Assembly (NCBI GenBank): GCA_002269645.1
Contig: NIVC01000794.1
Coordinates: 36,106-100,105 of the forward strand
Direction of reading: 5' to 3'
Length of the DNA stretch: 64,000 nt
Source of the DNA: Macrostomum lignano
Taxonomy: Eukaryota
Notes under the pieces: generated by a model
The model's input: the letters and a program-made list of their open reading frames with translations, nothing else
Database searches by the model: none
What the model was told of the DNA's origin: nothing
Shown: positions 25,600 through 64,000 of the stretch, one piece after another
Numbering within the stretch: the first letter of the stretch is position 1
Layout: every line of letters begins with the position of its first letter
Made by a program: the position numbers and the translations under genes

Positions 25600-35241
<9,642 letters not shown>

Positions 35242-38700: not shown

Positions 38701-39055
38701 TGTCTCTCTCCGTGTCTCTCCATGTCTCTCTCCGTGTCTCTTCTCTGTCTCTCCCCTGTCTCTCCCCTGTCTCTCTCCCTGTCTCTCTCCATGTCTCTCT
38801 CCGTGTCTCTTCTCTGTCTCTCCCCTGTCTCTCCCCTGTCTCTCTCCCTGTCTCTCTCCCTCTCTCTCTCTCGCTGGCTCTTCCCTGTCTCTCCCTATCT
38901 CTCGTGTCTCTCTCAAAAGTCTCTGTATCCGGCCCGGGTTCTTTGAAACTTCACAATAGCAATCCGGCCCGCTCAAGGTTTGTGTCTCTTTTCAGCTCTC
39001 TTCTCTCTAATCTCTCTCTCTCTCTCTCTCTCACTCTCTCTTTCACTCTCTCTCT

Positions 39056-39103
<48 letters not shown>

Positions 39104-42100: not shown

Positions 42101-42180
42101 GAGAATCGAAACCGATTCTACCTCCATACCAGTTGATGATTGAAGAATTTTGCAGAGAAAAATGCTCTAATGACTACTAA
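35788..42180 (+). CDS. ANKRD60: ANKRD60-like protein (ubiquitin-like domain plus ankyrin repeats); join 35788..35983,36193..36317,36973..37138,38065..38163,39460..39748,41248..41367,41754..42180
   Basis: ELVTGIPAELQQLSYLDAGVLSD (UBL), LFSMGVTKDSEFQTATSEY, VLFIACHRGYYE, GRTPLHVAAA, GKTAHDLA and CERRLF match the ANKRD60 architecture as I recall it. Phases are consistent. The start codon and the two low-complexity 3' exons are less certain. Confidence 0.82.
37460..37813. mobile_element. P-superfamily-like MITE (354 bp) with ~125-bp inverted arms (ANKRD60 intron 3)
   Basis: Termini caaagagtattgagg/cctcaatactctttg and 8-bp TSD ggaacttc (37452-37459, 37814-37821). CAAAG ends with an 8-bp TSD fit the P superfamily. 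Confidence 0.85.
38385..39330. repeat. CT-rich low-complexity and minisatellite tract (ANKRD60 intron 4)
   Basis: ctgtctctctccc units followed by (CT)n and pyrimidine runs. Confidence 0.92.
40635..41160. repeat. 15-bp G-rich minisatellite (ANKRD60 intron 5)
   Basis: gggatgggagtct(a/g)t, about 35 copies. Confidence 0.95.
41445..41685. repeat. 25-bp minisatellite (ANKRD60 intron 6)
   Basis: catttccgcagaaactgccacactc, about 9 copies. Confidence 0.9.
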
Positions 42181-42461
42181 AACTCTATTTGAGTATTGAG
42201 TAGCAATTTGAGGTCTTATAGTCAAAACAGATCTGTTTGATACATTGTTTATGGTTCCTGCAATGGCACTTGTACTCTTTAACTGTTTCTCAAGCAATGT
42301 TTTTTTTATTTCTTTTAATTTACACGGTAGAGTAATTTTTTTCTGCACAGCCAAATTTGTTTACCAGGCTTCAATGAAAAAATCCATTTCGGGCATTTTA
42401 TTGTCTTGCTAAATCTATTTAGTCTACTCAAGTTAGTAGAAGGTACGCCCTAACACGACTC

Positions 42462-42880
42462 TTGGATGACTCTCTTTCACGACTCTTTTGGGTGACTCTC
42501 TTTCACGACTCTTTTGGGTGACTCTCTTTCACGACTCTTTTGGATGACTCTCTTTCACGACTCTTTTGGATGACTCTCTTTCACGACTCTTTTGGATGAC
42601 TCTCTTTCACGACTCTTTTGGATGACTCTCTTTCACGACTCTTTTGGATGACTCTCTTTCACGACTCTTTTGGATGACTCTCTTTCACGACTCTTTTGGA
42701 TGACTCTCTTTCACGACTCTTTTGGATGACTCTCTTTCACGACTCTTTTGGATGACTCTCTTTCACGACTCTTTTGGATGACTCTCTTTCACGACTCTTT
42801 TGGATTACTCTCTTTCACGACTCTTTTGGATGACTCTCTTTCACGACTCTTTTGGATGACTCTCTTTCACGACTCTTTCG
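42462..42880. repeat. 26-bp minisatellite, about 16 copies
   Basis: tggatgactctctttcacgactcttt. Confidence 0.95.
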
Positions 42881-43888
42881 ATTCGGCAACTCTAGTGATG
42901 CGCCCGCGACTCAGCAGTCGCCTCTCCGTCGTAAGGACAGTCGTTTGAGTCGTTGAAAAGTCACCAGAATCCCCAACGATGCAGAAATTAAGCAGAAACA
43001 CTTGAAGCTTCGATGCCCAGTTAGTCAGCGATTAAGCAAAGACTTAATCGAAAAATTAATATAATGATATATGCTTTTTATTCTCAAAGTATATTAGCCA
43101 TTTTTATTATCACATACTAAAGCTATACACTATGAATATGTATCAATGACAAAATGAACAATGCCAACAATTAAAACAAAACTGCAATGCCCGAGAATGA
43201 TTGCTGTATTATAATATTGTAGCCGGGGCTACTGACGGAAAAAATTGTTTTAAAAAATAATGGTAAACCAGGAAAAATTAAATGGATTGCACATCAATGG
43301 ATTGGACCGAGCGTTGCCGTTGAAGAGAAATTAGATAAAAATATGTCAACTAAGTGGCTAATAAGAAATTAAAGCTTATCATTTTCAAATGAAACTTTCA
43401 TAGCTAATTATTTAAAAACAGAAGCAGTAGCTCAACAACTTAAGCTAAAAAATAAACTATAAAAGAAGTCGAGGCAAAAGATTCAAAAACCTCAATGTCA
43501 GAAATAAACTGTGTACAAAAAAGCTTATAAGACTAGGCAAAAAATAAATTGCTTTCTTTATATAAAGCGAAAACCTACTGGTGTGAGAGAATGGCATGCG
43601 ATTCTCTACCTACCTGCTTTTTAATGGCCATGAGACAATTTGACAAAAAAACCGAAAATGTACAAACAATGATTTTGTGAATGCGATCGAAAATATTAGT
43701 ATGATATAGCTTATAAACTATAATAGAAAAAATCTGATACAAAACATTAGAAGAATGTTTCAATGAATTGCGTTTTAATCAATTTAGAATTTTGTTTTTT
43801 CCCAAAATAAAACAAATAAAGGTGGTAGTTAACCTGGATGTAGCTAGTCTACTTACATAGTAAACGTTATCGTGTTTAATTGGAAAGA

Positions 43889-44190
43889 ACTGAAGATGCT
43901 AGTCAGCCCGCTTCACCCGGAGGGGGGCACTACTCTAGTCTAATATACTAAAATGGCATCATGACTGAAGATGCTAGTCAGCCCTCTTCACCCGGAGGGG
44001 GGCACTACTCTAGTCTAATATACTAAAATGGCATCATGACTGAAGATGCTAGTCAGCCCTCTTCACCCGGAGGGGGGCACTACTCTAGTCTAATATACTA
44101 AAATGGCATCATGACTGAAGATGCTAGTCAGCCCTCTTCACCCGGAGGGGGGACTATTACTAGTCTAATATACTAAAATGGCATAATGAC
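43889..44190. repeat. 75-bp tandem repeat x4
   Basis: tgaagatgctagtcagcc... recurs at 43891, 43966, 44041 and 44116. Confidence 0.95.
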
Positions 44191-44344
44191 CAAGGATGTC
44201 CCCACCCAAAGAAGGGCACTGTAGCTAATCTAAAATACAAAAATAGTTAAGGTAACAATCTGTAACTTTCTGACACCTGCTATGCCATATTAAAATTATA
44301 AGAATAACCTGATTGTACACTCGTGGCCTACAGCCTTCCTCCGT

Positions 44345-46341
44345 CTATTCCCCAGTCGGGTCTACAAAGGCCCAGATTTCTAAATCGCGCACTAGAAAAT
44401 CTTCTTCAGTAGAGTCGCCGCACAGCACCGGACTATTGAAGGTCTCGCAAGGCTGCGAGCGGCCACGGCAAAGATCGGCGTCTAGCCAGATTGCGCAACG
44501 ACCGCCGGAGCTGCCAATGGCGAAGTGGTCCAGATCGCCACGCATAAAGAACATGTTCTCGCCCGTCCAAGCGTATTGATAGAAGTCTTTGTCTGCTTCG
44601 CACTCGGCTGAGCCATCGTTTGAGTCTTTGTCGCTTTCTGAATTATCTGAACTTGCTTCGCCGGCAAGTTGACCTTGGCCATGTGACTGTTTGCTGAAAA
44701 TAATTTACGAAGTTGTCACTTGGGCGACGTAGAGACAACATGTGATGTAACACACGTATGAGCGAATGCAATGCCCAAGCTAGGGTAAGAAAGTAGGATT
44801 TCTAAGGCTGTCGAACTGTTGGGGAATCAGCGAGATGGAATTCAATGACAATCTACCAGATGGGAATCTATGAGATGAGAGTCTATGGGATTAGAACCTA
44901 TGGATGGGAGTCTATGGGATGGGAATCTATGTGATGGGAATCTATGGGATGGGAATCTATGAGATGGGAATCTATGGGATGGGAGTCTGTGGGATGGGAG
45001 TCTGTGGGATGGGAATCTATGTGATGGGAGTCTGTGGGATGGGAGTCTATGGGTTGGGAATCTATAGGATGGCAATCTATAGATGAGAATCTATGGATGG
45101 GAATCTATAGGATGAGTCTATGGGATGGGAATCTATGGGATGAGTCTATGGGATGGGAATCCATGAGATGGGAATCTATGAGATGAGTCTATGGGATGGG
45201 AATCTATGGGATGGGAATCTATGAGATGAGTCTATGGGATGGGAATACATGGGATGGGAATCTATGAGATGAGTCTATGGGATGGGAATCTATGGGATGG
45301 GAGTCTATGGGTTGGGAATCTACGGGATGGGAGTCTATGGGTTGGGAATCTACGGGATGGGAGTCTATGGGATGGGAATCTACGGGATGGGAATCTATGG
45401 GATGGGAATCTACGGGATGGGAGTCTATGGGATGGGAGTCTATGGGTTGGGAGTCTATGGGATGGGAGTCTATGGGATGGGAGTCTATGGGATGGGAGTC
45501 TATGGGCTGGGAGTCTATGGGATGGGAGTCTATGGGATGGGAGTCTATGGGATGGGAGTCTATGGGATGGGAATCCATAGGATGGGAAGTTATGGATTGG
45601 AGTCTACATAAAAGCAATGAAATAAATTAGCGACACGCCAGCCAATAATTGTAATACATTGCACTTCTCCTCACCACTCGGGCCTCTCCAGCGGAACACG
45701 AACGTCTCTCCAGTTCCATAGTAGCGTCGTTCGGACACGCGCAGCTCCGCCGATAGAAAAGCGCCAAACAGGCGCTCAGTCACGGTTGCCACTAGCAACA
45801 GGCAGTAGGGCTCCCGGGCGCCCATGCAGCTCTCTGTCGCTGTCAGTCGACAAGCTCGATAGGCCGACTTCAACGAGAAGCCGTCCCGACGAGCCGAGTG
45901 CACCAGCCGCAGGTCAAGTCCTTCCGCTCGGCTGGGCAGCGCGGCGACAACATGTCGAAGCCGGCGATGGTTCAGCAGCCATCGACGTCGAGCCGACGAC
46001 GGCGACGATGTCGATAGGCGACGCGGCAAAGGCAGGTCGGAACGAGTCGGCAGAACGGCGGCGACATTGGCGGATTCTTTTGAATCGGCCACTGTCGTCG
46101 GGGTGGCGCTCATGGCAGCCAGAAGGCCCCGATAATAGTCCGGGTGACTGCAGTCGGACGCCGTTGCGGCGGCGGAGGCGGCGGCCGCTGCCACGTCATC
46201 AGCCGTGATGTCGTCGTAGCTGTCGTTGTCATCGTCGTATTCCTCCGCCGAGGAGGACGCGGCGACGTCGATTTCCACGGCGGCGACGTCAGCGCAGTCC
46301 TTGGCTTCGTTGGCAGCCTGGGAGTCGCCGCTGGCTGGCTG
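44345..46341 (-). CDS. TLDc-domain protein (OXR1/NCOA7 family), 5' end unresolved; complement(join 44345..44637,45675..46341)
   Basis: LVHSARRDGFSLKSAY, LFGAFLSAELRVSERRYYGTGETFVF, YAWTGENMFFMRGD, AIWLDADLCRGRSQPCETF and LEIWAF. Phase-1 GT-AG intron at 44638-45674. Confidence 0.88.
44855..45605. repeat. 15-bp minisatellite in the TLDc intron, same family as 40635-41160
   Basis: gggatggga(g/a)tctat units. Confidence 0.95.
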
Positions 46342-46514
46342 CTGATGTACAAGGCGTTATTGACAGATTTGGTTTGATTGACAGGCGTGCTTGGGCGCAC
46401 TTTAAGCGACATTGTCACACAACCGGCTAGAGGCATTACTGACTGCCCATTTCGCCGACTCCCCTGAGCAGGCACACAAGAGCGCAGATACGTACGCAGC
46501 CATACGAAGTGTAC

Positions 46515-46790
46515 TGTACAGGGACACAGGGGCATGGAGGACACAAGGGACATGGGGGACACAGGGGCATGGAGGACACAAGGGACATGGGGGACACAGG
46601 GGGCATGGGGGACACAGGGGGCATGGGGACACAGGGGGCATGGGGGATACAGGGGCATGGGGGACACAGGGGCATGGGGGACACAGGGGGCATGGGGGAC
46701 ACAGGGGGCATGGGGGACACAAAGGGGCATGGGGACACAGGGGCATGGGGGACACAGGGGCATGAAAAGGACGCAGGAGGGGCATGAGTG
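46515..46790. repeat. ~17-bp G-rich minisatellite
   Basis: ggggacacagggggcat units. Confidence 0.9.
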
Positions 46791-47269
46791 AGTGACAATG
46801 AAACCAAAAAGGACATATAAAAATTAACAGAAAAGCGACTGCCGAACTGCTAAGAACTTGAATTACCTGGCAAAGCAAAAATATAAAAAACATTTTACAA
46901 TCAGTTAGCTAGTAATAAAAAATCAGCTACGTTGCAGAAATTATCGATCTACAAAATTATTAATCCTGGGTTAGGGTGAAATGCCTGCTGTTACAACAAA
47001 ATCCTACCGCTAGTGACTGTGTACACATTAATTTTTCGACTCAATACCATGCTTGATTCAAGTGGTAGGCAATGTCTGCTAGAAATTTCATGTCAGATTG
47101 CAAATATTAAAAAAAATTGCTGAAATTTTTAACTTATGATCCGATAAAAGAGGATTTTATCTACTCCAGAGGGGTAAAGAGCTTTTTATACTAAAAATAA
47201 CCATATTTTTATAAGGAAAATTCCGTATTTCACAACCGTAACTAAGTTGTTTCTAAACTTTCAGAGCCT

Positions 47270-48543
47270 TCACTCCTAAACCTTCCGGCGCTTTACTCCT
47301 GAACCTTCAGGCGCTTTACTCCTGAACCTTCAGGCGCTTTACTCCTGAACCTTCAGGCGCTTTACTCCTGAACCTTCAGGCGCTTTACTCCTGAACCTTC
47401 CGGCGCTTTACTCCTGAACCTTCAGGCGCTTTACTCCTGAACCTTCAGGCGCTTTACTCCTGAACCTTCGGGCGCTTTACTCCTGAACCTTCGGGCGCTT
47501 TACTCCTGAACCTTCGGGCGCTTTACTCCTGAACCTTCGGCGCTTTACTCCTGAACCTTCAGGCGCTTTACTCCTGAACCTTCAGGCGCTTTACTCCTGA
47601 ACCTTCAGGCGCTTTACTCCTGAACCTTCAGGTGCTTTACTCCTAAACCTTCAGGCGCTTTACTCCTGAACCTTCGGGCGCTTTACTCCTGAACCTTCGG
47701 GCGCTTTACTCCTGAACCTTCGGGCGCTTTACTCCTGAACCTTCAGGCGCTTTACTCCTGAACCTTCCGGCGCTTTACTCCTGAACCTTCAGGCGCTTTA
47801 CTCCTGAACCTTCAGGCGCTTTACTCCTGAACCTTCGGGCGCTTTACTCCTGAACCTTCGGGCGCTTTACTCCTGAACCTCCAGGCGCTTTACTACTGAA
47901 CCTTCAGTCCCTTTACACCTAAACATTCAGATCCTTCACTCCTGAACATCCAGATTCTTCACTTCTGAACATTCAGATTCTTCACTTCTGAACATTCAGT
48001 CCCTTCACTCCTGAACATTCAGTCCCTTCGCTCCTGAACCTTCAGATCCTTCACTCCTGACCATTCAGATCCTTCACTCCTGAACATCCAGATTCTTCAC
48101 TTCTGAACATTCAGATTCTTCACTTCTGAACATTCAGTCCCTTCACTCCTGAACATTCAGTCCCTTCACTCCAGAACATTCAAATTCTTCACTCCTGAAC
48201 ATTCAGTCCCTTCGCTTCTGAACCTTCAGATCCTTCACTCCTGAACATTCAGTCCTTCACTCCTGAACATTCAGATTCTTCACTTCTGAACATTCAGTCC
48301 CTTCACTCCTGAACATTCAGTCCTTCGCTCCTGAACCTTCAGTCCCTTCACTCCTGAACATTCAGTCCGTTCGCTCCTGAACATTCAGATCCTTCACTCC
48401 TGAACATTCAGATTCTTCACTCCTGAACATTCAGTCCCTTCGCTCCTGAACCTTCAGACCCTTCACTCCTGAAACTTCAGTCTCTTCACTCCTGAACCTT
48501 CAGACCCTTCACTCCTGAACCTTCAAATCCTTTACTCCTGAAA
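47270..48543. repeat. 23-bp minisatellite running into the assembly gap
   Basis: actcctgaaccttcaggcgcttt, grading to actcctgaacattcagtcccttc. Confidence 0.95.
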
Positions 48544-48822
48544 NNNNNNNNNNNNNNNNNNNNNNNNNNNNNNNNNNNNNNNNNNNNNNNNNNNNNNNNN
48601 NNNNNNNNNNNNNNNNNNNNNNNNNNNNNNNNNNNNNNNNNNNNNNNNNNNNNNNNNNNNNNNNNNNNNNNNNNNNNNNNNNNNNNNNNNNNNNNNNNNN
48701 NNNNNNNNNNNNNNNNNNNNNNNNNNNNNNNNNNNNNNNNNNNNNNNNNNNNNNNNNNNNNNNNNNNNNNNNNNNNNNNNNNNNNNNNNNNNNNNNNNNN
48801 NNNNNNNNNNNNNNNNNNNNNN
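48544..48822. other. Assembly gap (279 N)
   Basis: Run of n. Confidence 0.99.
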
Positions 48823-48838
48823 GTTAAGAGGCAAAAAA

Positions 48839-48955
48839 GACAACAGCATTTGGTATTCCCAGGCGGTCACCCATCCAAGTACTAACCAAACCAACGTTGC
48901 TTAACTTCGGTGATCAGACGAGAACCGGTGTTTTCAACGTGGTATGGCCGTTGCC
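48839..48955 (-). rRNA. 5S_rRNA: 5S rRNA, copy 1 (1-nt deletion, next to the gap)
   Basis: GGCAACGGCCATACCACGTTGAAAACACCGG...GTACTTGGATGGGTGACCGCCTGGGAATACC...GCTGTTGTC followed by a T6 terminator. Confidence 0.95.
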
Positions 48956-49798
48956 ACTGGCTGATAGGAGCTGAGCTCATAATTAACCTGAACCTGCAGC
49001 TACATGTATATACGGACCATACGGTACGGATCAATTGTGTGGGCCGCCTCTCGTCTATACTCTAATTATTGTAATATATAATTAGTAATGCGGACGGATT
49101 TACCGCGCTCGTAGTATATAGTGAACTATAGTGGTGATTTGCAGTCAAGTCAAAGTCAACCTAACTAGCTCAACGCAAACAGTAACGCGTACAGTCCAGC
49201 TTGACTCTGTATACTCAGCAACATTGAAAAGTCGCCACTCTATGCGCCAGTGATCAATTTGTCTTGGACTATTCTGAAATAAAAGATGCCAGAAAAACTG
49301 ATCGGGGTAGCTTTGATCCGTCCAAACCTCGCACACCGCTCCCCCACTCCATTCCTCAACTCAAGTCTGCCGTGGCGTAGCTGAGTTGCGTCGCTCGCAA
49401 ATATTGAGAGAGACTTTACCTGCACTCTCTCAAAAGTGGCGACCACAGACGGAATCTTCTGTGATGGCGACTTTTCAATGTTGCTGAGTATAATTCATTG
49501 TTGGCGCCATCAACAAAGTTGTACATGTACATATGCACATCCGCACGCATAGAGCGATCTAAGAAATTACATTTGATTATTGCAACTCGAAGAGATCTAG
49601 TATAGCCTAGTATAGCCTCTGTACACCGCGATGCATATGCGCGCTATATCATGCTATGCTATAATGGTGCAACAACTAATTTACAACTTGCGGGTAAATA
49701 GAATATTTAGTTTAAAATAATTAGTAGGACACGCTAAATCCAGAATTACAATCAACCAACTATAATTAATTGATTGTGTGTCTTTAGCTTTGTTAGGC

Positions 49799-49909
49799 AG
49801 CGCGGTTAGCGCGGCTTGTCAAAAATTGAGTAGATCGCTCAATTGGATCCACGCGGTGTCTTACCATGCAAAATATTGAGTCTTCGCAGTAAGAGACCGT
49901 CGATACGGC
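49799..49909 (-). ncRNA. SL_RNA: Spliced-leader (SL) RNA, copy 1
   Basis: 45-nt exon ending AUG (49909-49865), GTAAG donor, Sm site AATTTTTGA. The 3' stem has small indels in this copy. Confidence 0.88.
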
Positions 49910-50484
49910 AAAGAGACGAGCTGGAACCGGCTCTCACTGAGTGCACAGCTCTCCGTTTGAGCCTCGAGCCTAGGGCAAATTATTTTGTTGAACTTTATCT
50001 ACTCCAAGTAAGTTTTGCCGACTAGTGCAGCATTATTTTGCACTAGAGCTTGAAAAGAGCTGCGCGAAAAAGTTTCTTTCTTTCTTTTAGCCGACATGTT
50101 TAGAAAGTGTGCACACAAACGCGCCTCCTAGTTGATTGATTGATGGCTATAAATCAAGTAAAATTCCATGTGAGAAATGGAGATACTCGTAAAACTATTA
50201 ATACACAGTGCATAAGTGCATTAGCGTTACCGCGTGCAAATGCAAAGTGCGCATACAAAATATGAAACGCGAATCGAATCCCTTGACTTGATAGAGTGGA
50301 GTGGAACTCGAAAGGAAGGAATCAGCAGACACCTATGCCGTATGCCCGTATGGTAAAAATTCAAGCAGCATCCAATCCAGTTGGCGGGCGCGGGCGGATT
50401 AGTGGGCCTGGGCCTAAGTATTAATGCATGCAGCAGCTGGAGTTAGTTGATGAGCGCGCGGCATGCAGTTAAAGAGGCAAAAAA

Positions 50485-50602
50485 GACAACAGCATTTGGT
50501 ATTCCCAGGCGGTCACCCATCCAAGTACTAACCAAACCCAACGTTGCTTAACTTCGGTGATCAGACGAGAACCGGTGTTTTCAACGTGGTATGGCCGTTG
50601 CC
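50485..50602 (-). rRNA. 5S_rRNA: 5S rRNA, copy 2
   Basis: 118-nt core plus T6. Stem I GGCAACGGC/GCTGTTGTC, A box, C box, and a TATA-like element at about -24 to -31. Confidence 0.97.
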
Positions 50603-50858
50603 ACTGGCTGATAGGAGCTGAGCTCATAATTAACCTGAACCTGCAGCTACATGTATATACGGACCATACGGTACGGATCAATTGTGTGGGCCGCCTCTCG
50701 TCTATACTCTAATTATTGTAATATATAATTAGTAATGCGGACGGATTTACCGCGCTCGTAGTATATAGTGAACTATAGTGGTGATTTGCAGTCAAGTCAA
50801 AGTCAACCTAACTAGCTCAACGCAAACAGTAACGCGTACAGTCCAGCTTGACTCTGTA

Positions 50859-51137
50859 TACTCAGCAACATTGAAAAGTCGCCACTCTATGCGCCAGTGA
50901 TCAATTTGTCTTGGACTATTCTGAAATAAAAGATGCCAGAAAAACTGATCGGGGTAGCTTTGATCCGTCCAAACCTCGCACACCGCTCCCCCACTCCATT
51001 CCTCAACTCAAGTCTGCCGTGGCGTAGCTGAGTTGCGTCGCTCGCAAATATTGAGAGAGACTTTACCTGCACTCTCTCAAAAGTGGCGACCACAGACGGA
51101 ATCTTCTGTGATGGCGACTTTTCAATGTTGCTGAGTA
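50859..51137. mobile_element. 279-bp MITE with TA TSD, present in every 5S/SL unit (representative copy)
   Basis: 26-bp perfect TIR tactcagcaacattgaaaagtcgcca, TA on both sides. It occurs at the homologous position in all 7 units. Confidence 0.85.
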
Positions 51138-51443
51138 TAATTCATTGTTGGCGCCATCAACAAAGTTGTACATGTACATATGCACATCCGCACGCATAGA
51201 GCGATCTAAGAAATTACATTTGATTATTGCAACTCGAAGAGATCTAGTATAGCCTAGTATAGCCTCTGTACACCGCGATGCATATGCGCGCTATATCATG
51301 CTATGCTATAATGGTGCAACAACTAATTTACAACTTGCGGGTAAATAGAATATTTAGTTTAAAATAATTAGTAGGACACGCTAAATCCAGAATTACAATC
51401 AACCAACTATAATTAATTGATGTTGTCTTTAGCTTTGTTAGGC

Positions 51444-51554
51444 AGCCGCGGTAGCGCGGCTTGTCAAAAATTGAGTAGATCGCTCAATTGGATCCACGCG
51501 GTGTCTTACCATGCAAAATATTGAGTCTTCGCAGTAAGAGACCGTCGATACGGC
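51444..51554 (-). ncRNA. SL_RNA: Spliced-leader (SL) RNA, copy 2 (~111 nt)
   Basis: GCCGTATCGACGGTCTCTTACTGCGAAGACTCAATATTTTGCATG|GTAAG...AATTTTTGA...AGCCGCGCTACCGCGGCT. The donor lies in a stem (TCTTAC/GTAAGA, TGCGAAG/TTTTGCA). Confidence 0.92.
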
Positions 51555-52131
51555 AAAGAGACGAGCTGGAACCGGCTCTCACTGAGTGCACAGCTCTCCG
51601 TTTGAGCCTCGAGCCCTAGGGCAAATTATTTTGTTGAACTTTATCTACTCCAAGTAAGTTTTGCCGACTAGTGCAGCATTATTTTGCACTAGAGCTTGAA
51701 AAGAGCTGCGCGAAAAAGTTTCTTTCTTTCTTTTAGCCGACATGTTTAGAAAGTGTGCACACAAACGCGCCTCCTAGTTGATTGATTGATGGCTATAAAT
51801 CAAGTAAAATTCCCATGTGAGAAATGGAGATACTCGTAAAACTATTAATACACAGTGCATAAGTGCATTAGCGTTACCGCGTGCAAATGCAAAGTGCGCA
51901 TACAAAATATGAAACGCGAATCGAATCCCTTGACTTGATAGAGTGGAGTGGAACTCGAAAGGAAGGAATCAGCAGACACCTATGCCGTATGCCCGTATGG
52001 TAAAAATTCAAGCAGCATCCAATCCAGTTGGCGGGCGCGGGCGGATTAGTGGGCCTGGGCCTAAGTATTAATGCATGCAGCAGCTGGAGTTAGTTGATGA
52101 GCGCGCGGCATGCAGTTAAAGAGGCAAAAAA

Positions 52132-52249
52132 GACAACAGCATTTGGTATTCCCAGGCGGTCACCCATCCAAGTACTAACCAAACCCAACGTTGCTTAACT
52201 TCGGTGATCAGACGAGAACCGGTGTTTTCAACGTGGTATGGCCGTTGCC
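52132..52249 (-). rRNA. 5S_rRNA: 5S rRNA, copy 3
   Basis: Identical to copy 2. Confidence 0.97.
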
Positions 52250-53096
52250 ACTGGCTGATAGGAGCTGAGCTCATAATTAACCTGAACCTGCAGCTACATG
52301 TATATACGGACCATACGGTACGGATCAATTGTGTGGGCCGCCTCTCGTCTATACTCTAATTATTGTAATATATAATTAGTAATGCGGACGGATTTACCGC
52401 GCTCGTACTCGTAGTATATAGTGAACTATAGTGGTGATTTGCAGTCAAGTCAAAGTCAACCTAACTAGCTCAACGCAAACAGTAACGCGTACAGTCCAGC
52501 TTGACTCTGTATACTCAGCAACATTGAAAAGTCGCCACTCTATGCGCCAGTGATCAATTTGTCTTGGACTATTCTGAAATAAAAGATGCCAGAAAAACTG
52601 ATCGGGGTAGCTTTGATCCGTCCAAACCTCGCACACCGCTCCCCCACTCCATTCCTCAACTCAAGTCTGCCGTGGCGTAGCTGAGTTGCGTCGCTCGCAA
52701 ATATTGAGAGAGACTTTACCTGCACTCTCTCAAAAGTGGCGACCACAGACGGAATCTTCTGTGATGGCGACTTTTCAATGTTGCTGAGTATAATTCATTG
52801 TTGGCGCCATCAACAAAGTTGTACATGTACATATGCACATCCGCACGCATAGAGCGATCTAAGAAATTACATTTGATTATTGCAACTCGAAGAGATCTAG
52901 TATAGCCTAGTATAGCCTCTGTACACCGCGATGCATATGCGCGCTATATCATGCTATGCTATAATGGTGCAACAACTAATTTACAACTTGCGGGTAAATA
53001 GAATATTTAGTTTAAAATAATTAGTAGGACACGCTAAATCCAGAATTACAATCAACCAACTATAATTAATTGATGTTGTCTTTAGCTTTGTTAGGC

Positions 53097-53207
53097 AGCC
53101 GCGGTAGCGCGGCTTGTCAAAAATTGAGTAGATCGCTCAATTGGATCCACGCGGTGTCTTACCATGCAAAATATTGAGTCTTCGCAGTAAGAGACCGTCG
53201 ATACGGC
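53097..53207 (-). ncRNA. SL_RNA: Spliced-leader (SL) RNA, copy 3
   Basis: Identical to copy 2. Confidence 0.92.
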
Positions 53208-53785
53208 AAAGAGACGAGCTGGAACCGGCTCTCACTGAGTGCACAGCTCTCCGTTTGAGCCTCGAGCCCTAGGGGCAAATTATTTTGTTGAACTTTATCT
53301 ACTCCAAGTAAGTTTTGCCGACTAGTGCAGCATTATTTTGCACTAGAGCTTGAAAAGAGCTGCGCGAAAAAGTTTCTTTCTTTCTTTTAGCCGACATGTT
53401 TAGAAAGTGTGCACACAAACGCGCCTCCTAGTTGATTGATTGATGGCTATAAATCAAGTAAAATTCCCATGTGAGAAATGGAGATACTCGTAAAACTATT
53501 AATACACAGTGCATAAGTGCATTAGCGTTACCGCGTGCAAATGCAAAGTGCGCATACAAAATATGAAACGCGAATCGAATCCCTTGACTTGATAGAGTGG
53601 AGTGGAACTCGAAAGGAAGGAATCAGCAGACACCTATGCCGTATGCCCGTATGGTAAAAATTCAAGCAGCATCCAATCCAGTTGGCGGGCGCGGGCGGAT
53701 TAGTGGGCCTGGGCCTAAGTATTAATGCATGCAGCAGCTGGAGTTAGTTGATGAGCGCGCGGCATGCAGTTAAAGAGGCAAAAAA

Positions 53786-53902
53786 GACAACAGCATTTGG
53801 TATTCCCAGGCGGTCACCCATCCAAGTACTAACAAACCCAACGTTGCTTAACTTCGGTGATCAGACGAGAACCGGTGTTTTCAACGTGGTATGGCCGTTG
53901 CC
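53786..53902 (-). rRNA. 5S_rRNA: 5S rRNA, copy 4 (1-nt deletion)
   Basis: As copy 2, but aagtactaacaaaccc lacks one C. Confidence 0.95.
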
Positions 53903-54751
53903 ACTGGCTGATAGGAGCTGAGCTCATAATTAACCTGAACCTGCAGCTACATGTATATACGGACCATACGGTACGGATCAATTGTGTGGGCCGCCTCTCG
54001 TCTATACTCTAATTATTGTAATATATAATTAGTAATGCGGACGGATTTACCGCGCTCGTAGTATATAGTGAACTATAGTGGTGATTTGCAGTCAAGTCAA
54101 AGTCAACCTAACTAGCTCAACGCAAACAGTAACGCGTACAGTCCAGCTTGACTCTGTATACTCAGCAACATTGAAAAGTCGCCACTCTATGCGCCAGTGA
54201 TCAATTTGTCTTGGACTATTCTGAAATAATTAAATAAAAGATGCCAGAAAAACTGATCGGGGTAGCTTTGATCCGTCCAAACCTCGCACACCGCTCCCCC
54301 ACTCCATTCCTCAACTCAAGTCTGCCGTGGCGTAGCTGAGTTGCGTCGCTCGCAAATATTGAGAGAGACTTTACCTGCACTCTCTCAAAAGTGGCGACCA
54401 CAGACGGAATCTTCTGTGATGGCGACTTTTCAATGTTGCTGAGTATAATTCATTGTTGGCGCCATCAACAAAGTTGTACATGTACATATGCACATCCGCA
54501 CGCATAGAGCGATCTAAGAAATTACATTTGATTATTGCAACTCGAAGAGATCTAGTATAGCCTAGTATAGCCTCTGTACACCGCGATGCATATGCGCGCT
54601 ATATCATGCTATGCTATAATGGTGCAACAACTAATTTACAACTTGCGGGTAAATAGAATATTTAGTTTAAAATAATTAGTAGGACACGCTAAATCCAGAA
54701 TTACAATCAACCAACTATAATTAATTGATGTTGTCTTTAGCTTTGTTAGGC

Positions 54752-54862
54752 AGCCGCGGTAGCGCGGCTTGTCAAAAATTGAGTAGATCGCTCAATTGGA
54801 TCCACGCGGTGTCTTACCATGCAAAATATTGAGTCTTCGCAGTAAGAGACCGTCGATACGGC
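54752..54862 (-). ncRNA. SL_RNA: Spliced-leader (SL) RNA, copy 4
   Basis: Identical to copy 2. Confidence 0.92.
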
Positions 54863-55440
54863 AAAGAGACGAGCTGGAACCGGCTCTCACTGAGTGCACA
54901 GCTCTCCGTTTGAGCCTCGAGCCCTAGGGGCAAATTATTTTGTTGAACTTTATCTACTCCAAGTAAGTTTTGCCGACTAGTGCAGCATTATTTTGCACTA
55001 GAGCTTGAAAAGAGCTGCGCGAAAAAGTTTCTTTCTTTCTTTTAGCCGACATGTTTAGAAAGTGTGCACACAAACGCGCCTCCTAGTTGATTGATTGATG
55101 GCTATAAATCAAGTAAAATTCCCATGTGAGAAATGGAGATACTCGTAAAACTATTAATACACAGTGCATAAGTGCATTAGCGTTACCGCGTGCAAATGCA
55201 AAGTGCGCATACAAAATATGAAACGCGAATCGAATCCCTTGACTTGATAGAGTGGAGTGGAACTCGAAAGGAAGGAATCAGCAGACACCTATGCCGTATG
55301 CCCGTATGGTAAAAATTCAAGCAGCATCCAATCCAGTTGGCGGGCGCGGGCGGATTAGTGGGCCTGGGCCTAAGTATTAATGCATGCAGCAGCTGGAGTT
55401 AGTTGATGAGCGCGCGGCATGCAGTTAAAGAGGCAAAAAA

Positions 55441-55558
55441 GACAACAGCATTTGGTATTCCCAGGCGGTCACCCATCCAAGTACTAACCAAACCCAACGT
55501 TGCTTAACTTCGGTGATCAGACGAGAACCGGTGTTTTCAACGTGGTATGGCCGTTGCC
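55441..55558 (-). rRNA. 5S_rRNA: 5S rRNA, copy 5
   Basis: Identical to copy 2. Confidence 0.97.
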
Positions 55559-56405
55559 ACTGGCTGATAGGAGCTGAGCTCATAATTAACCTGAACCTGC
55601 AGCTACATGTATATACGGACCATACGGTACGGATCAATTGTGTGGGCCGCCTCTCGTCTATACTCTAATTATTGTAATATATAATTAGTAATGCGGACGG
55701 ATTTACCGCGCTCGTACTCGTAGTATATAGTGAACTATAGTGGTGATTTGCAGTCAAGTCAAAGTCAACCTAACTAGCTCAACGCAAACAGTAACGCGTA
55801 CAGTCCAGCTTGACTCTGTATACTCAGCAACATTGAAAAGTCGCCACTCTATGCGCCAGTGATCAATTTGTCTTGGACTATTCTGAAATAAAAGATGCCA
55901 GAAAAACTGATCGGGGTAGCTTTGATCCGTCCAAACCTCGCACACCGCTCCCCCACTCCATTCCTCAACTCAAGTCTGCCGTGGCGTAGCTGAGTTGCGT
56001 CGCTCGCAAATATTGAGAGAGACTTTACCTGCACTCTCTCAAAAGTGGCGACCACAGACGGAATCTTCTGTGATGGCGACTTTTCAATGTTGCTGAGTAT
56101 AATTCATTGTTGGCGCCATCAACAAAGTTGTACATGTACATATGCACATCCGCACGCATAGAGCGATCTAAGAAATTACATTTGATTATTGCAACTCGAA
56201 GAGATCTAGTATAGCCTAGTATAGCCTCTGTACACCGCGATGCATATGCGCGCTATATCATGCTATGCTATAATGGTGCAACAACTAATTTACAACTTGC
56301 GGGTAAATAGAATATTTAGTTTAAAATAATTAGTAGGACACGCTAAATCCAGAATTACAATCAACCAACTATAATTAATTGATGTTGTCTTTAGCTTTGT
56401 TAGGC

Positions 56406-56516
56406 AGCCGCGGTAGCGCGGCTTGTCAAAAATTGAGTAGATCGCTCAATTGGATCCACGCGGTGTCTTACCATGCAAAATATTGAGTCTTCGCAGTAAG
56501 AGACCGTCGATACGGC
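56406..56516 (-). ncRNA. SL_RNA: Spliced-leader (SL) RNA, copy 5
   Basis: Identical to copy 2. Confidence 0.92.
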
Positions 56517-57094
56517 AAAGAGACGAGCTGGAACCGGCTCTCACTGAGTGCACAGCTCTCCGTTTGAGCCTCGAGCCCTAGGGGCAAATTATTTTGTTGA
56601 ACTTTATCTACTCCAAGTAAGTTTTGCCGACTAGTGCAGCATTATTTTGCACTAGAGCTTGAAAAGAGCTGCGCGAAAAAGTTTCTTTCTTTCTTCTAGC
56701 CGACATGTTTAGAAAGTGTGCACACAAACGCGCCTCCTAGTTGATTGATTGATGGCTATAAATCAAGTAAAATTCCCATGTGAGAAATGGAGATACTCGT
56801 AAAACTATTAATACACAGTGCATAAGTGCATTAGCGTTACCGCGTGCAAATGCAAAGTGCGCATACAAAATATGAAACGCGAATCGAATCCCTTGACTTG
56901 ATAGAGTGGAGTGGAACTCGAAAGGAAGGAATCAGCAGACACCTATGCCGTATGCCCGTATGGTAAAAATTCAAGCAGCATCCAATCCAGTTGGCGGGCG
57001 CGGGCGGATTAGTGGGCCTGGGCCTAAGTATTAATGCATGCAGCAGCTGGAGTTAGTTGATGAGCGCGCGGCATGCAGTTAAAGAGGCAAAAAA

Positions 57095-57212
57095 GACAAC
57101 AGCATTTGGTATTCCCAGGCGGTCACCCATCCAAGTACTAGCCAAACCCAACGTTGCTTAACTTCGGTGATCAGACGAGAACCGGTGTTTTCAACGTGGT
57201 ATGGCCGTTGCC
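57095..57212 (-). rRNA. 5S_rRNA: 5S rRNA, copy 6 (U72C variant; insertion 70 bp upstream)
   Basis: As copy 2, except G at 57141 on the + strand. Confidence 0.95.
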
Positions 57213-57282
57213 ACTGGCTGATAGGAGCTGAGCTCATAATTAACCTGAACCTGCAGCTACATGTATATACGGACCATACGGT

Positions 57283-60200
57283 GGGTCGTTCTCAAAGCTA
57301 GGTCACAACTTTTTGTTATTGCAAAAAAAGTTTATACATCGACCAATAATCGTACAAAAAAAATTATTTCGACAATTTCTGTAAGAAGCTGCTACTAAAA
57401 CCACAAGAAAACTTGAAATTGAGAAGAAATCAAGGCTATTTGTTATTCTTTGTTGCGGAAAATAAACGACAAAAATATTAAAGAGAAAATAATATTTTCT
57501 TCTATTTTTATTTTAAATATGCAGTTAAATTTCTTTTGCAAAAATAAAAGAACAAGAAATTGACAAAGGAAATGTTTTTGAGCACAGCATTTTGTTACTC
57601 TGCTCTAAATCCCAGACATTTAAAATTATCGTGTGCGAAGTGCGAAATTATTATAGCATGCACTCGAAAGGACTTCGATCAGTTTAACTAATCACTGAAT
57701 TAAGAAGTCTAAATAAGTCTTGAAAGGTTGAATTAAAAATCAAGTTTTCACTATGTATCTTTTCAAAGTCAAGATGATTCGACAAATAAAGAATGTTCAT
57801 TTTTACGGTGAATAGAATTGTTCATTTTTACATTAAATATAATAAAATCTAACTAATAATAGAAAAAGTCAGGGAACTATCCTTGAACACCAGCAAGCAC
57901 ATTGTGGATTTAATATCAACTGCATGTTCCTTAATAAAGGAATTCGGATTCTAGTATATATTTGATTATTTGTAGCATAATTTCTGAAAACTATAACTTG
58001 CTTGATTTTACTTTAAGTACTTATTACATTAATACTTATACCAAAGCTACATGTACTTAAAATAAAAAATTATAGTTACTTATTAGACATTTTACTCCAA
58101 TTAACTTAAAATAATTCAAATTTATTTTAATTAATTCATTTTTTGAAACTTTTTGGAAAATAGACAAAATTGAATTATTTAATTACCAAAAACCTACTAG
58201 CTTAACTAAAATAGCAATTAGTCTTTAAGAAAAGATTTCACTTGTTAATTGAGAAAAATGAGGATGTGCGAGGTGTAAAAATGCGAAAGAGCATGCAGGA
58301 AACAGAGACAAACAAAAATGTAGGTAAAAGACACTGCACATGCACATAATATGATAACCAGACATAATGCGCACACTGAAACACCAGTAGCAATGACGCC
58401 CAAGCTTTTGATGATCACAAGCGAAAAGGCAAAACCCAGCCATCAATCAAAGAAGTAGACTTTAGCACGCATCTTGAGTGCATCACACATTTTTTGCAGA
58501 GAAGCTCGAAAATTAACATTGTATTCTGTGCACAACCACCAACTGCGACAGGGTCTGCCGGGGGATTTGTGGGCACGCGGTCGCGGATACAAATCGGAGG
58601 AGTCGCTGACCATTCTGAAATTACTAGCTAGTACATGTAATTTTGTGTAATAATATATTTAGCCCGCTTTATTTCTATGCTCTCGTCCGCCTCTCGTTAA
58701 TGCATCCCCAGACTCTTGCAATAATCAAACTTATGATCGACCTATGCATGGCTTCCGTCCCTCGCTTTGAATCTCTCACCTCCCCATAGTTCCATCAACC
58801 TTACCTTAGTGGCTTCCTATGCAAAAATCATCCCTCCGCATCTTACACAGGCTACTTCAGGCTGTAGACTGTACTACACTTTTACTTCAGTAATTAGTTG
58901 CGCTATAAGGAATCTACATGTATTTTGCTCGCAGCGCAGCGCGCTGCTCAAAGAAGTTTAGTTCTATCTAGATATTCTAGTAATTTCAGGTTTGTCTATA
59001 GACTAGAGCTCATGAGATGAGAATTCCATTAACTAGTACATTTAATATGAATGAACTGCGTGTGTGTGTGCTGTGCATACATATGTATAATATACGAGTA
59101 GTTTATGGGCCAAATTATTGTGTGGCACAATTCTTGGCATCACTCAGCAGGCACAAGATGCAGTTAAGCAGCGCACGAAAATTCTACAAAAGAAATTGAG
59201 CCTGGTTGAGGTGATGCGAGGAGGCAGATCCACACAATCTCAGTGAATACACCAGACTGCACCAGATACGAGTCCAGTCGAATGTGCGCACTGGTCTAAG
59301 CAGCACACGCATGTCCTTCTGACAATGACGGCACCTAGCTTCGTCCAAGCCTTTGCCAGCGTCACTGACAGCGTCAATACTACCATGCAGTGCCACCTGC
59401 AGCACCGACAACGGCAATTCCTCCAGTTAGCCCACAACAGTGGCTAAACTGAGGGACAGGGAACCTACCCACAGAAGACACACACATACACACACAGCAC
59501 CGGCAGCAGCACTCTGACAGCATAACCTGAAGCTCCATGAGCTCAGTTTTCAAGCATTGAAGAAGCAGAAGCAGTCATCTTGGATCCAGGGATCAGGAAG
59601 AGTGTTGCATGTCCGACATGTGCTGTTTCCGTGGCAAAAGGTGATGAAGCAAATTAATCAACACTTACTATCTAGCTCGTATTAAGACTAAAAAACTGAG
59701 GCAAGCTGGGATTAAACCAAAGAAAATTTTTTACTATACTTTTTTACCATACTTTTACTATACTTCTATAGTATAGTAGAGAGGTACTCTATTTAAATGC
59801 AGTAAGAAGTGAAACAAATTTATATATTTAATTATTAAATTAAATTAATTCAAGGTAAATAACTAATTTAACCAATTTATTAGGAGTATTTATTATTATA
59901 ATAAATTGATTTTTATACCTTACACGAAATAAGCTCTACATTCATTTCTTAGCTTGGGGCCCATCTGTATAAGGTCAGTTTCTTCAAAATGCTGATTAAT
60001 TAATTAAGGCCTGTTGTCTTTACTTAAATTTATAAGGGCATCTTAGAAGTTAATATTACTATATAATACATGTATAATAGTATTACTATATTATAATAAT
60101 ATAGTTGCAATTTTAATGACTATTGAATAAGTTTAAATGCTTCCCCTATTGACTTTAAATATATGGTATCTTTCCCTTCAGAAAAAATTAGCATAGAATG

Positions 60201-61086
60201 ACTTGATGAAAACAAAAAAAATCATTTCGAGATACACATTTGCTGATCATTCAGGTCAAATTTCAAGGTCCAGTTTTGCACATGTTTCTCTGTAGCTTGG
60301 TTACAAGGATTTTAATAAAAATATAATAAATATGTCCAATGAACTAACTGATACATAGCCAAATTGAAGTATTTTCAAAAACAAAAAAAATCATTTGCTC
60401 AGTTTACTTTACTGAATATCTTTATAAAATTTCAGCTCAAAAGGTGCTCCATGGAGAATGCTAGTGTGGTTACAGGATATTTATTTTGTGCTTCAAAGTA
60501 GGAGTTTATTGCGATGCATGGTTGCTTTTAATTATTTTTATCAACAATAGTGCTCTATTTCATAACAATTTTTTACAAAAAGATAATAAGACATGTTTTT
60601 CTAATTATCTGCATCAAAATGTATCATTTTAAGCACGCATTCTAGACGTCAGCCGAAAAATACATTTTGTGAGACGCAAAGAGGCTATCCCACCGGAAAT
60701 GCTAGGCGTACAGTTAAGCGTCTATAAAATTATTTGTAGTGCAGTTTATTGAGCTTTAAAAAATTCTTAAATTAAATTTATATAAGCTTTCATTTTAAAT
60801 GTAATATAGCTAGGTTTCAACACAACAACAACTTTTTTTAGCTACAGACATCTTGTAGTATCAAAAATTAACATCGGTGAAATGATTGAATTTGAATTTT
60901 TTCATCGCTAATTATCGCTTAATACCGCCAGATGATTAAAAACACTTTTGTATGATAAATTTCAACCCAAAAATTATCTTTATTGACAGATAAAAGTGTC
61001 CTATTATTTTCAATATGGCAGTAACAATAGTAAATGTTCGGAAAATTGTTAAAATTTTTGCTCCTCCTAGAATTTGCGAACGACCC
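57283..61086. mobile_element. 3804-bp non-autonomous DNA transposon (TIR plus 4-bp TSD; possibly Sola2-like)
   Basis: TIR gggtcgttctcaaa / tttgcgaacgaccc (1 mismatch) and TSD cggt at 57279-57282 and 61087-61090. Removing it restores the spacer ggaccatacggtacggatc. The interior is AT-rich with no long ORF. Confidence 0.9.
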
Positions 61087-61867
61087 CGGTACGGATCAAT
61101 TGTGTGGGCCGCCTCTCGTCTATACTCTAATTATTGTAATATATAATTAGTAATGCGGACGGATTTACCGCGCTCGTACTCGTAGTATATAGTGAACTAT
61201 AGTGGTGATTTGCAGTCAAGTCAAAGTCAACCTAACTAGCTCAACGCAAACAGTAACGCGTACAGTCCAGCTTGACTCTGTATACTCAGCAACATTGAAA
61301 AGTCGCCACTCTATGCGCCAGTGATCAATTTGTCTTGGACTATTCTGAAATAAAAGATGCCAGAAAAACTGATCGGGGTAGCTTTGATCCGTCCAAACCT
61401 CGCACACCGCTCCCCCACTCCATTCCTCAACTCAAGTCTGCCGTGGCGTAGCTGAGTTGCGTCGCTCGCAAATATTGAGAGAGACTTTACCTGCACTCTC
61501 TCAAAAGTGGCAACCACAGACGGAATCTTCTGTGATGGCGACTTTTCAATGTTGCTGAGTATAATTCATTGTTGGCGCCATCAACAAAGTTGTACATGTA
61601 CATATGCACATCCGCACGCATAGAGCGATCTAAGAAATTACATTTGATTATTGCAACTCGAAGAGATCTAGTATAGCCTAGTATAGCCTCTGTACACCGC
61701 GATGCATATGCGCGCTATATCATGCTATGCTATAATGGTGCAACAACTAATTTACAACTTGCGGGTAAATAGAATATTTAGTTTAAAATAATTAGTAGGA
61801 CACGCTAAATCCAGAATTACAATCAACCAACTATAATTAATTGATGTTGTCTTTAGCTTTGTTAGGC

Positions 61868-61978
61868 AGCCGCGGTAGCGCGGCTTGTCAAAAATTGAGT
61901 AGATCGCTCAATTGGATCCACGCGGTGTCTTACCATGCAAAATATTGAGTCTTCGCAGTAAGAGACCGTCGATACGGC
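61868..61978 (-). ncRNA. SL_RNA: Spliced-leader (SL) RNA, copy 6
   Basis: Identical to copy 2. Confidence 0.92.
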
Positions 61979-62556
61979 AAAGAGACGAGCTGGAACCGGC
62001 TCTCACTGAGTGCACAGCTCTCCGTTTGAGCCTCGAGCCCTAGGGGCAAATTATTTTGTTGAACTTTATCTACTCCAAGTAAGTTTTGCCGACTAGTGCA
62101 GCATTATTTTGCACTAGAGCTTGAAAAGAGCTGCGCGAAAAAGTTTCTTTCTTTCTTTTAGCCGACATGTTTAGAAAGTGTGCACACAAACGCGCCTCCT
62201 AGTTGATTGATTGATGGCTATAAATCAAGTAAAATTCCCATGTGAGAAATGGAGATACTCGTAAAACTATTAATACACAGTGCATAAGTGCATTAGCGTT
62301 ACCGCGTGCAAATGCAAAGTGCGCATACAAAATATGAAACGCGAATCGAATCCCTTGACTTGATAGAGTGGAGTGGAACTCGAAAGGAAGGAATCAGCAG
62401 ACACCTATGCCGTATGCCCGTATGGTAAAAATTCAAGCAGCATCCAATCCAGTTGGCGGGCGCGGGCGGATTAGTGGGCCTGGGCCTAAGTATTAATGCA
62501 TGCAGCAGCTGGAGTTAGTTGATGAGCGCGCGGCATGCAGTTAAAGAGGCAAAAAA

Positions 62557-62674
62557 GACAACAGCATTTGGTATTCCCAGGCGGTCACCCATCCAAGTAC
62601 TAACCAAACCCAACGTTGCTTAACTTCGGTGATCAGACGAGAACCGGTGTTTTCAACGTGGTATGGCCGTTGCC
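62557..62674 (-). rRNA. 5S_rRNA: 5S rRNA, copy 7
   Basis: Identical to copy 2. Confidence 0.97.
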
Positions 62675-63521
62675 ACTGGCTGATAGGAGCTGAGCTCATA
62701 ATTAACCTGAACCTGCAGCTACATGTATATACGGACCATACGGTACGGATCAATTGTGTGGGCCGCCTCTCGTCTATACTCTAATTATTGTAATATATAA
62801 TTAGTAATGCGGACGGATTTACCGCGCTCGTACTCGTAGTATATAGTGAACTATAGTGGTGATTTGCAGTCAAGTCAAAGTCAACCTAACTAGCTCAACG
62901 CAAACAGTAACGCGTACAGTCCAGCTTGACTCTGTATACTCAGCAACATTGAAAAGTCGCCACTCTATGCGCCAGTGATCAATTTGTCTTGGACTATTCT
63001 GAAATAAAAGATGCCAGAAAAACTGATCGGGGTAGCTTTGATCCGTCCAAACCTCGCACACCGCTCCCCCACTCCATTCCTCAACTCAAGTCTGCCGTGG
63101 CGTAGCTGAGTTGCGTCGCTCGCAAATATTGAGAGAGACTTTACCTGCACTCTCTCAAAAGTGGCGACCACAGACGGAATCTTCTGTGATGGCGACTTTT
63201 CAATGTTGCTGAGTATAATTCATTGTTGGCGCCATCAACAAAGTTGTACATGTACATATGCACATCCGCACGCATAGAGCGATCTAAGAAATTACATTTG
63301 ATTATTGCAACTCGAAGAGATCTAGTATAGCCTAGTATAGCCTCTGTACACCGCGATGCATATGCGCGCTATATCATGCTATGCTATAATGGTGCAACAA
63401 CTAATTTACAACTTGCGGGTAAATAGAATATTTAGTTTAAAATAATTAGTAGGACACGCTAAATCCAGAATTACAATCAACCAACTATAATTAATTGATG
63501 TTGTCTTTAGCTTTGTTAGGC

Positions 63522-63632
63522 AGCCGCGGTAGCGCGGCTTGTCAAAAATTGAGTAGATCGCTCAATTGGATCCACGCGGTGTCTTACCATGCAAAATATT
63601 GAGTCTTCGCAGTAAGAGACCGTCGATACGGC
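63522..63632 (-). ncRNA. SL_RNA: Spliced-leader (SL) RNA, copy 7
   Basis: Identical to copy 2; only about 82 bp of unit upstream sequence is retained. Confidence 0.9.
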
Positions 63633-63714
63633 AAAGAGACGAGCTGGAACCGGCTCTCACTGAGTGCACAGCTCTCCGTTTGAGCCTCGAGCCCTAGGGC
63701 AAATTATTTTGTTG

Positions 63715-63935
63715 CATTAGAAAGTTCAAATCGGACTTCGAGAACTCATCTGCGTCTTTCAGTACCATGAGCGCGGGTCCACCGTCGGAACACCAGAGTA
63801 ATTTCTTCGCCGCATGCCACTCTTGGAAAGTAGCAAACATCCAGCGACATTTTTTTAGCGTGTTTGTTGGAACCGTTCCTTCGATGAGTGAACTGACTTC
63901 TTCGTCAGTCAGATTGACAATCTTTCGGTAGCCAT
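63715..63935 (-). pseudogene. Truncated, frameshifted N-terminus of a Crypton-like (DUF3504/KCTD1-related) tyrosine recombinase ORF
   Basis: MATER(F, 1-nt deletion)VNLTDEEVSSLIEGTVPTNTLKKCRWMFATFQEW...SKSDLNFLMQ resembles the RF..lt.eE....vP.NT.k...W....F.eW...eLn..L pattern of Crypton N-termini. Confidence 0.55.
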
Positions 63936-64000
63936 TTTAACTAGCTAGCTAAGCCAAGCACTCGCGCTGTCTCTCTTCTTTTTACGAGCGCGTCTTTTAT

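Follow-up and report, generated by a model that had tools for sequence, protein, structure and literature searches.

Does the small-RNA gene that accompanies each 5S ribosomal RNA (rRNA) gene in a tandem array of the flatworm Macrostomum lignano encode a spliced leader (SL) RNA and, if so, is it the one whose leader is known from the mRNAs of this species? The array lies on the minus strand at 48823-63712 of a 64,000-nucleotide stretch of contig NIVC01000794.1 (assembly GCA_002269645.1, forward-strand positions 36,106 to 100,105), which we refer to as the window. It is a co-oriented series of 5S and SL-type genes, and we are very nearly certain of its anatomy, its homology to Macrostomum SL RNA genes, its species of origin, its unit length and its homogenization. 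New relative to the searchable literature are the 5S-linked SL-type array of M. lignano and the fact that the leader encoded in it is not the major one. Use of this gene is a separate and more delicately poised question, on which we favor an expressed minor SL RNA over a pseudogene carried along with the 5S genes.

Seven 5S rRNA genes occupy the minus strand within 48838-62674, each matching the Rfam model RF00001 over its full length (model positions 1-120) with 109-116 bits, compared to a gathering score of 38. They are found at 62556-62674 (116.5 bits), 57094-57212 (a single T>C difference), 55440-55558, 53785-53902 (a 1-nt deletion in a G run, probably an assembly error), 52131-52249, 50484-50602 and 48838-48955, the last of which adjoins a scaffold gap and also has a 1-nt deletion in a G run. 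TTTTTT directly follows ...GCTGTTGTC in all 5S copies, giving each a terminator for RNA polymerase III (Pol III), and TTAATTAT occurs at about -33 to -26 of the 52131-52249 gene. The 5S genes would be read by Pol III with an internal promoter, a TTAATTAT box near -30 and the T6 terminator.

Alternating head-to-tail with the 5S genes are seven SL-type genes, each beginning with the 45-mer GCCGTATCGACGGTCTCTTACTGCGAAGACTCAATATTTTGCATG. This exon has exactly seven occurrences, on the minus strand only (exact-match starts at 63632, 61978, 56516, 54862, 53207, 51554 and 49909), and no further copy is present anywhere in the window with six errors allowed. The genes span 63522-63632 (copy 1, a 45-nt variant exon plus a 66-nt intron half, with its upstream region cut at -78 by the array edge), 61868-61978 (copy 2), 56406-56516 (copy 3), 54752-54862 (copy 4), 53097-53207 (copy 5), 51444-51554 (copy 6, our reference) and 49799-49909 (copy 7, which adjoins the gap and has an altered 3' hairpin, GCCGCGCTAACCGCGCTGCC, possibly reflecting a low-quality contig end). 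Read along the minus strand, a unit consists of the exon, GTAAGACACCG, a stem-loop, AAUUUUUGA, the hairpin AGCCGCG-CUAC-CGCGGCU, 841 bp between SL end and 5S start, the 5S gene with its T6 run, and 576 bp between 5S end and the next exon, so that every head-to-tail repeat unit holds one SL-type and one 5S gene. Full units are 1645-1655 bp long and at least 99.7% identical in pairwise comparison, with 0-5 substitutions and a small number of short indels between them. Unit comparison resolves the assembled array into six full units and one 1087-bp unit truncated at the gap, a run of 279 N (48544-48822) that separates the array from a minisatellite-rich flank. At the right edge, which falls at about 63712 and 78 bp upstream of the last SL-type gene, the array passes into unique DNA at a true junction. 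Published outward-facing primers for the M. lignano 5S gene both have exact matches in the window and yield in-silico polymerase chain reaction (PCR) products of 1643-1652 bp; on M. lignano DNA, the same primers gave a product of 1645 bp (PMC5704211), and this agreement in size provides independent experimental support for the unit. The first-pass annotation of this DNA had described a 5S gene and an SL-type gene on the same strand in every unit, with spacers of ~840 and ~580 bp, and the seven plus seven minus-strand genes and the measured spacers bear this out. Its coordinates were accurate, and its proposal of a co-oriented array under concerted evolution agrees with the strong homogenization seen among units.

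The SL-type gene has the parts expected of an SL RNA gene, and the hallmarks listed in the first-pass annotation (45-nt exon, GUAAG donor, Sm site, GC-rich 3' hairpin) were all recovered. In the reference copy, the exon occupies 51554-51510, the GUAAG donor 51509-51505, the Sm site AAUUUUUGA 51472-51464 and the 3' hairpin 51461-51444; when unspliced, the leader end ...GACTCAATATTTTGCATG runs into GTAAGACACC. The leader ends in AUG, as does that of Schistosoma and other flatworms. The 111-nt RNA is predicted to fold with its donor paired to the exon (-36.8 kcal/mol, z = -3.7), U16-U22 pairing with G45-A51 in the minimum-energy structure, so that a mini-exon is combined with a pairable donor. 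AAUUUUUGA conforms to the Sm-site consensus RAU4-6GR and is single-stranded in the fold, with stem II on one side and the GC-rich 3' hairpin on the other. In an Rfam scan at the gathering threshold and at E <= 10, the gene matched no SL family; the Sm site and hairpin gave chance-level matches only, to U5 and SmY (E about 3).

Homology to a proven leader was found by comparison with M. lignano mRNAs, which carry CCGTAAAGACGGTCTCTTACTGCGAAGACTCAATTTATTGCATG (PMC5173321, PMC8629364). The array leader is identical to the published one at 41 of 45 positions, which establishes homology to a leader demonstrated on mRNAs of this lineage. It is not identical to the canonical Macrostomum sequence GCCGTAAAGACGGTCTCTTACTGCGAAGACTCAATTTATTGCATG: from canonical to array, AA becomes TC at positions 7-8, U becomes A at 36 and A becomes U at 38, and all seven copies share these four differences. 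The first-pass annotation took the array gene to be the SL RNA gene of the species, and that claim is not supported, given these 4 of 45 nt. Because its leader departs from the mRNA leader at four positions, we regard the 5S-linked gene as a variant paralogue and not as the known SL gene.

Scanning public sequence collections with a 20-nt core common to both leaders gave six matches outside the window: four are environmental transcripts, two are SL genes in genomic DNA, and all six have the canonical leader. The transcripts (L002, L003, L004 and L006, Ga0316592 contigs) begin with the leader and continue straight into coding sequence, which identifies them as trans-spliced mRNAs of environmental macrostomids and shows the SL family in use. 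The genomic matches are SL RNA genes with canonical exons on contigs Ga0302322_100095745 (L005) and JAGQZA010000190.1 (L007, gene at 1589-1692). The donor and the next 6 nt (GTAAGACACCG, 11 nt in total) are identical in the window, L005 and L007. Together with the 41 of 45 exon positions, this confirms the array gene as a homolog of Macrostomum SL RNA genes. Stems II and III differ in sequence among the three but are retained, although they are shorter in L005 and L007 than in the window gene, and the Sm-like site is UAUUUUUAG in those two genes as opposed to AAUUUUUGA in the array. Folded independently, the three RNAs adopt one common architecture, in which stems I and II are followed by the Sm site and then by stem III (z of -3.7 for the window RNA and of -3.5 and -4.4 for the other two). 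A scan of viral contigs with the SL core gave no match. L007 also contains a U1 small nuclear RNA (snRNA) gene (1121-1283, 151.7 bits) on the same strand, 306 bp upstream of its SL gene. This contig is filed in a Flavobacteriaceae metagenome-assembled genome but is macrostomid DNA, pointing to a contaminated bin as well as to U1-SL linkage, and it has TTAGGG-like repeats at about 270-340.

Could misassembly, an error in the consensus or contaminating DNA account for the 5S-SL adjacency or the leader differences? The array has an N gap at its boundary, its scaffold join is at odds with assembly Mlig_3_7, and its few 1-nt G-run indels resemble long-read errors. Against this, seven units agree in their junctions and in all four substitutions, the leader differences are substitutions and not homopolymer indels, and the predicted PCR product fits the published 1645 bp from M. 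lignano DNA. We consider an artefact highly improbable. A source other than M. lignano was also considered for the leader difference and was rejected on the basis of 100% protein identity and 99.93% DNA identity in the flank and the match in PCR product size. These identities stem from an exon at 45604-46278, which is 100% identical to PAA70452.1 of Macrostomum lignano, and from window positions 34345-48543, which are 99.93% identical to NIVC01001237.1 of Mlig_3_7. The two assemblies diverge at the gap. In NIVC01001237.1 (L001, positions 1-11837), a 23-bp minisatellite is followed by the first large exon of the gene, encoding PAA70452.1 residues 9-246, and a 5S gene is absent; the window lacks that exon, and its satellite runs up against the N gap, beyond which the array begins. 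Placement of the array beside its left flank is therefore doubtful, as the two are joined by a scaffold gap only and in disagreement with Mlig_3_7; linkage inside the array is unaffected.

If the gene is real, is it used? The reading we prefer is that this is the genuine M. lignano 5S rDNA repeat, each ~1.65-kb unit of which comprises a pair of independent, co-oriented small-RNA genes, the one 576 bp downstream of the 5S gene being an intact SL RNA gene paralogue. Like other SL and Sm-class snRNA genes, it would be transcribed by RNA polymerase II (Pol II). Its product would be a ~111-nt RNA with a 45-nt leader ending in AUG, paired to its own GUAAG donor, and two more hairpins around a perfect Sm site; this RNA would be made, assembled with Sm proteins and able to donate a minor variant leader to pre-mRNAs. 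Judging from its intact sequence, the array gene may well be such an expressed minor SL RNA, function included, and we put the chances at about even; the polymerase assignment, the expression and the use in trans-splicing are inferred with similarly balanced confidence.

For the polymerase, we infer Pol II because an internal T5 run within the variant SL-type gene would stop Pol III and because a 3'-box-like signal follows the gene. That signal lies in the flank GCCTAACAAAGCTAAAGACAA (51423-51443, minus strand), which includes the 9-mer TAAAGACAA. The 9-mer stands exactly 12 nt past the 3' hairpin in both the window gene and the canonical L007 gene, although the flanks are otherwise unalignable, and a related motif, CCTAACAAA, is also found after the L007 U1 gene. 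TAAAGACAA/CCTAACAAA thus looks like a conserved snRNA 3'-end signal. Evidence on the upstream side is weak and counts against the expressed-gene reading. An upstream block at -101 to -71 of the reference copy, GGAGTAGATAAAGTTCAACAAAATAAT (51625-51655, minus strand), is a weak candidate promoter element, partly common to L005 at the same distance; the shared part is an AGTAG...AACAAAA block near -100 to -70, amounting to weak upstream similarity. A comparison of the DNA upstream of the three SL genes and of the L007 U1 gene brought out no convincing common proximal sequence element, only low-complexity likeness of the AACAAAA type.

The chief competitor to an expressed minor SL RNA is a hitch-hiking pseudogene, in which an SL copy was captured once in the 5S spacer, then amplified and homogenized with it, and is silent or unused while canonical genes elsewhere do the work. 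We regard this as possible but the less probable of the two. Several observations speak for it and weigh correspondingly against use of the variant. Published M. lignano mRNAs are reported with the canonical leader only: k-mer-based SL discovery gave that sequence alone (PMC5173321), and a 2025 review states that the species has a single SL (PMC12582326). None of the six outside matches to the 20-nt core has the variant leader, which is likewise printed nowhere in the searchable literature. The canonical gene is reported as eight copies without a 5S context, and the canonical SL genes of two other macrostomids (L005 and L007) have no 5S gene on their contigs, within 0.6-2.3 kb of the SL gene. 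The leader known from M. lignano recurs unchanged in M. cliftonense and M. hystrix (PMC10468722, Table S3), making the canonical exon identical across three species and two environmental genes. Since that exon is invariant across the genus, yet four of its positions are changed in the array, these changes look like relaxed or altered constraint. That the seven SL copies are identical does not itself speak for selection, as the spacers match one another just as closely.

Concerted evolution is able to preserve junk in this array, a further point for the pseudogene, as is evident from a miniature inverted-repeat transposable element (MITE) fixed in every unit. This 283-bp TA-flanked MITE-like element has 28-bp perfect terminal inverted repeats and sits in the SL-to-5S spacer at 50857-51139, with one copy in each of the other units (49210-49492, 52510-52792, 54157-54447, 55819-56101, 61281-61563 and 62935-63217); a 43-bp end of the family also lies outside the array at 751-793. 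One unit alone has a 3804-bp insertion (57283-61086) with 14-nt terminal inverted repeats (13 of 14 complementary) and a 4-bp ACCG target duplication. It is AT-rich and non-coding, with no open reading frame (ORF) above 77 aa, and it lies 71 bp upstream of a 5S gene, leaving the -30 box intact. A MITE fixed in all units and an insertion private to one are together a signature of concerted evolution. The ORFs inside the array unit have no exact protein match on record.

What tells against a pseudogene is the state of the gene itself: damage is seen in no functional element, be it the donor or its pairing with the exon, the perfect Sm site, either hairpin or the 3'-box-like motif, and neutral decay would be expected to have struck at least one core element. 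The four exon changes spare the exon-donor helix in the predicted fold, in which positions 7 and 8 are unpaired, 36 lies in the stem I loop and 38 takes part in the A-U pair that closes stem I at its top. One of the changes adds a base pair. With the canonical exon swapped into the window RNA, the fold was the same (-35.2 versus -36.8 kcal/mol). We favor an expressed minor SL RNA because every core element is intact and the flanking processing signal is conserved across species. A search at the protein level did not contribute to this choice. The leader is open in all three reading frames, and a protein profile of the translated variant and canonical leaders was compared to 5.8 billion predicted proteins; no candidate was obtained, and since this included the canonical leader, the search is uninformative.

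A special case of the expressed minor SL RNA is that the 5S-linked leader constitutes a distinct, specialised class, used for instance by stage, tissue or operon position. M. lignano would then have two SL gene classes, a canonical one outside the 5S cluster and a second in every 5S rDNA unit, the leader of the latter being reserved for certain mRNAs, a certain cell type or a certain stage. The existence of two gene classes with different leaders in different genomic contexts, and the intactness of the variant gene, are compatible with such a division. Indiscriminate use is the rule for the SL RNAs so far studied in flatworms (PMC12582326), and the four differences are small; we consider both the specialised class and its use on distinct mRNAs unlikely.

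Linkage of 5S and SL genes is a recognised and recurrent arrangement (PMC1657053, PMC7346339, PMC10946416). The first-pass annotation was not aware of any case in macrostomids, and our literature check agrees with it: the searchable literature contains no report of 5S-SL linkage in Macrostomum or other flatworms, nor of a second Macrostomum SL, and a 2025 survey of SL loci in parasitic flatworms is silent on 5S (PMC12582326). The closest known parallel is the SL1 RNA/5S rRNA tandem repeat of C. elegans, with ~110 copies (PMC1657053). In both animals, one SL gene and one 5S gene share each monomorphic tandem unit, coupling a Pol II gene to a Pol III gene, and SL genes with other leaders are dispersed elsewhere in the genome. 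The C. elegans unit is ~1 kb long with its SL and 5S genes on opposite strands, unlike the ~1.65-kb M. lignano unit with both genes on the same strand. Moreover, the 5S-linked gene of C. elegans encodes the major leader, whereas that of M. lignano encodes a leader that is not the one known on mRNAs, and the SL RNAs of the two animals have no sequence homology.

Within M. lignano, the canonical SL RNA gene is 109 bp long and present in eight copies in the deduplicated Mlig_3_7 assembly, according to a description that does not mention 5S (Ustyantsev and Berezikov 2021, PMC8629364). In the canonical gene as in the array gene, the first hairpin holds the leader, the donor is GTAAG and two hairpins enclose an Sm-like site. 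They differ in length (109 versus 111 nt) and are identical at 41 of 45 leader positions, a comparison that covers the leader and not the intron half, and the canonical gene is not reported as 5S-linked or tandem. Among other flatworms, the SL RNA genes of Schistosoma mansoni form a 595-bp tandem repeat (PMC2770079). The S. mansoni, cestode and trematode SL clusters (PMC12582326) resemble the M. lignano array in being same-strand tandem arrays under concerted evolution, but accounts of them mention no 5S gene in the repeats, and they have shorter units and a two-stem RNA.

The recurrence of 5S-SL linkage in nematodes, euglenozoans and others has been used in arguments on the origin of SL trans-splicing and on the uniformity of SL genes, and a flatworm case would add an independent example in a transgenic model organism. 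If this repeat was the template for the published 5S probe for fluorescence in situ hybridization, a whole-unit PCR product of ~1645 bp, the probe would also hold the SL-type gene. Expression of the variant would mean that its trans-splicing events escape pipelines requiring an exact match to the 3' end of the canonical leader; if the variant is silent, the locus is a clean example of a small-RNA pseudogene kept intact by the concerted evolution of its host array. Should the leader prove specialised, M. lignano would be the first flatworm with SL specialisation, independently paralleling the SL1/SL2 split of nematodes, in which SL1 is 5S-linked and SL2-type genes are dispersed.

The surroundings of the array have several features of their own. 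On the left, minisatellites with periods of 15, 18, 23, 25, 26 and 75 bp crowd 40426-48542, and a 1.3-kb array of the 23-bp repeat ends at the gap. PAA70452.1, part of which is encoded in this flank, is an OXR1/TLDc protein. On the right, the unique DNA at 63713-64000 contains a minus-strand open frame (...LTDEEVSSLIEGTVPTNTLKKCRWMFATFQEWH...) that reads into the array and has no Pfam match. Farther away, an exon at 13770-14190 encodes a CUB domain (Pfam E = 1.2e-8) with no relative in the collection of 5.8 billion proteins. Two EF1-alpha genes lie on the plus strand at 5816-8714 and 21009-22508, about 15 kb apart; both are split into two exons by an intron at an identical position, between AQ and VIVLNHPGQ, and their first exons differ at a few residues.

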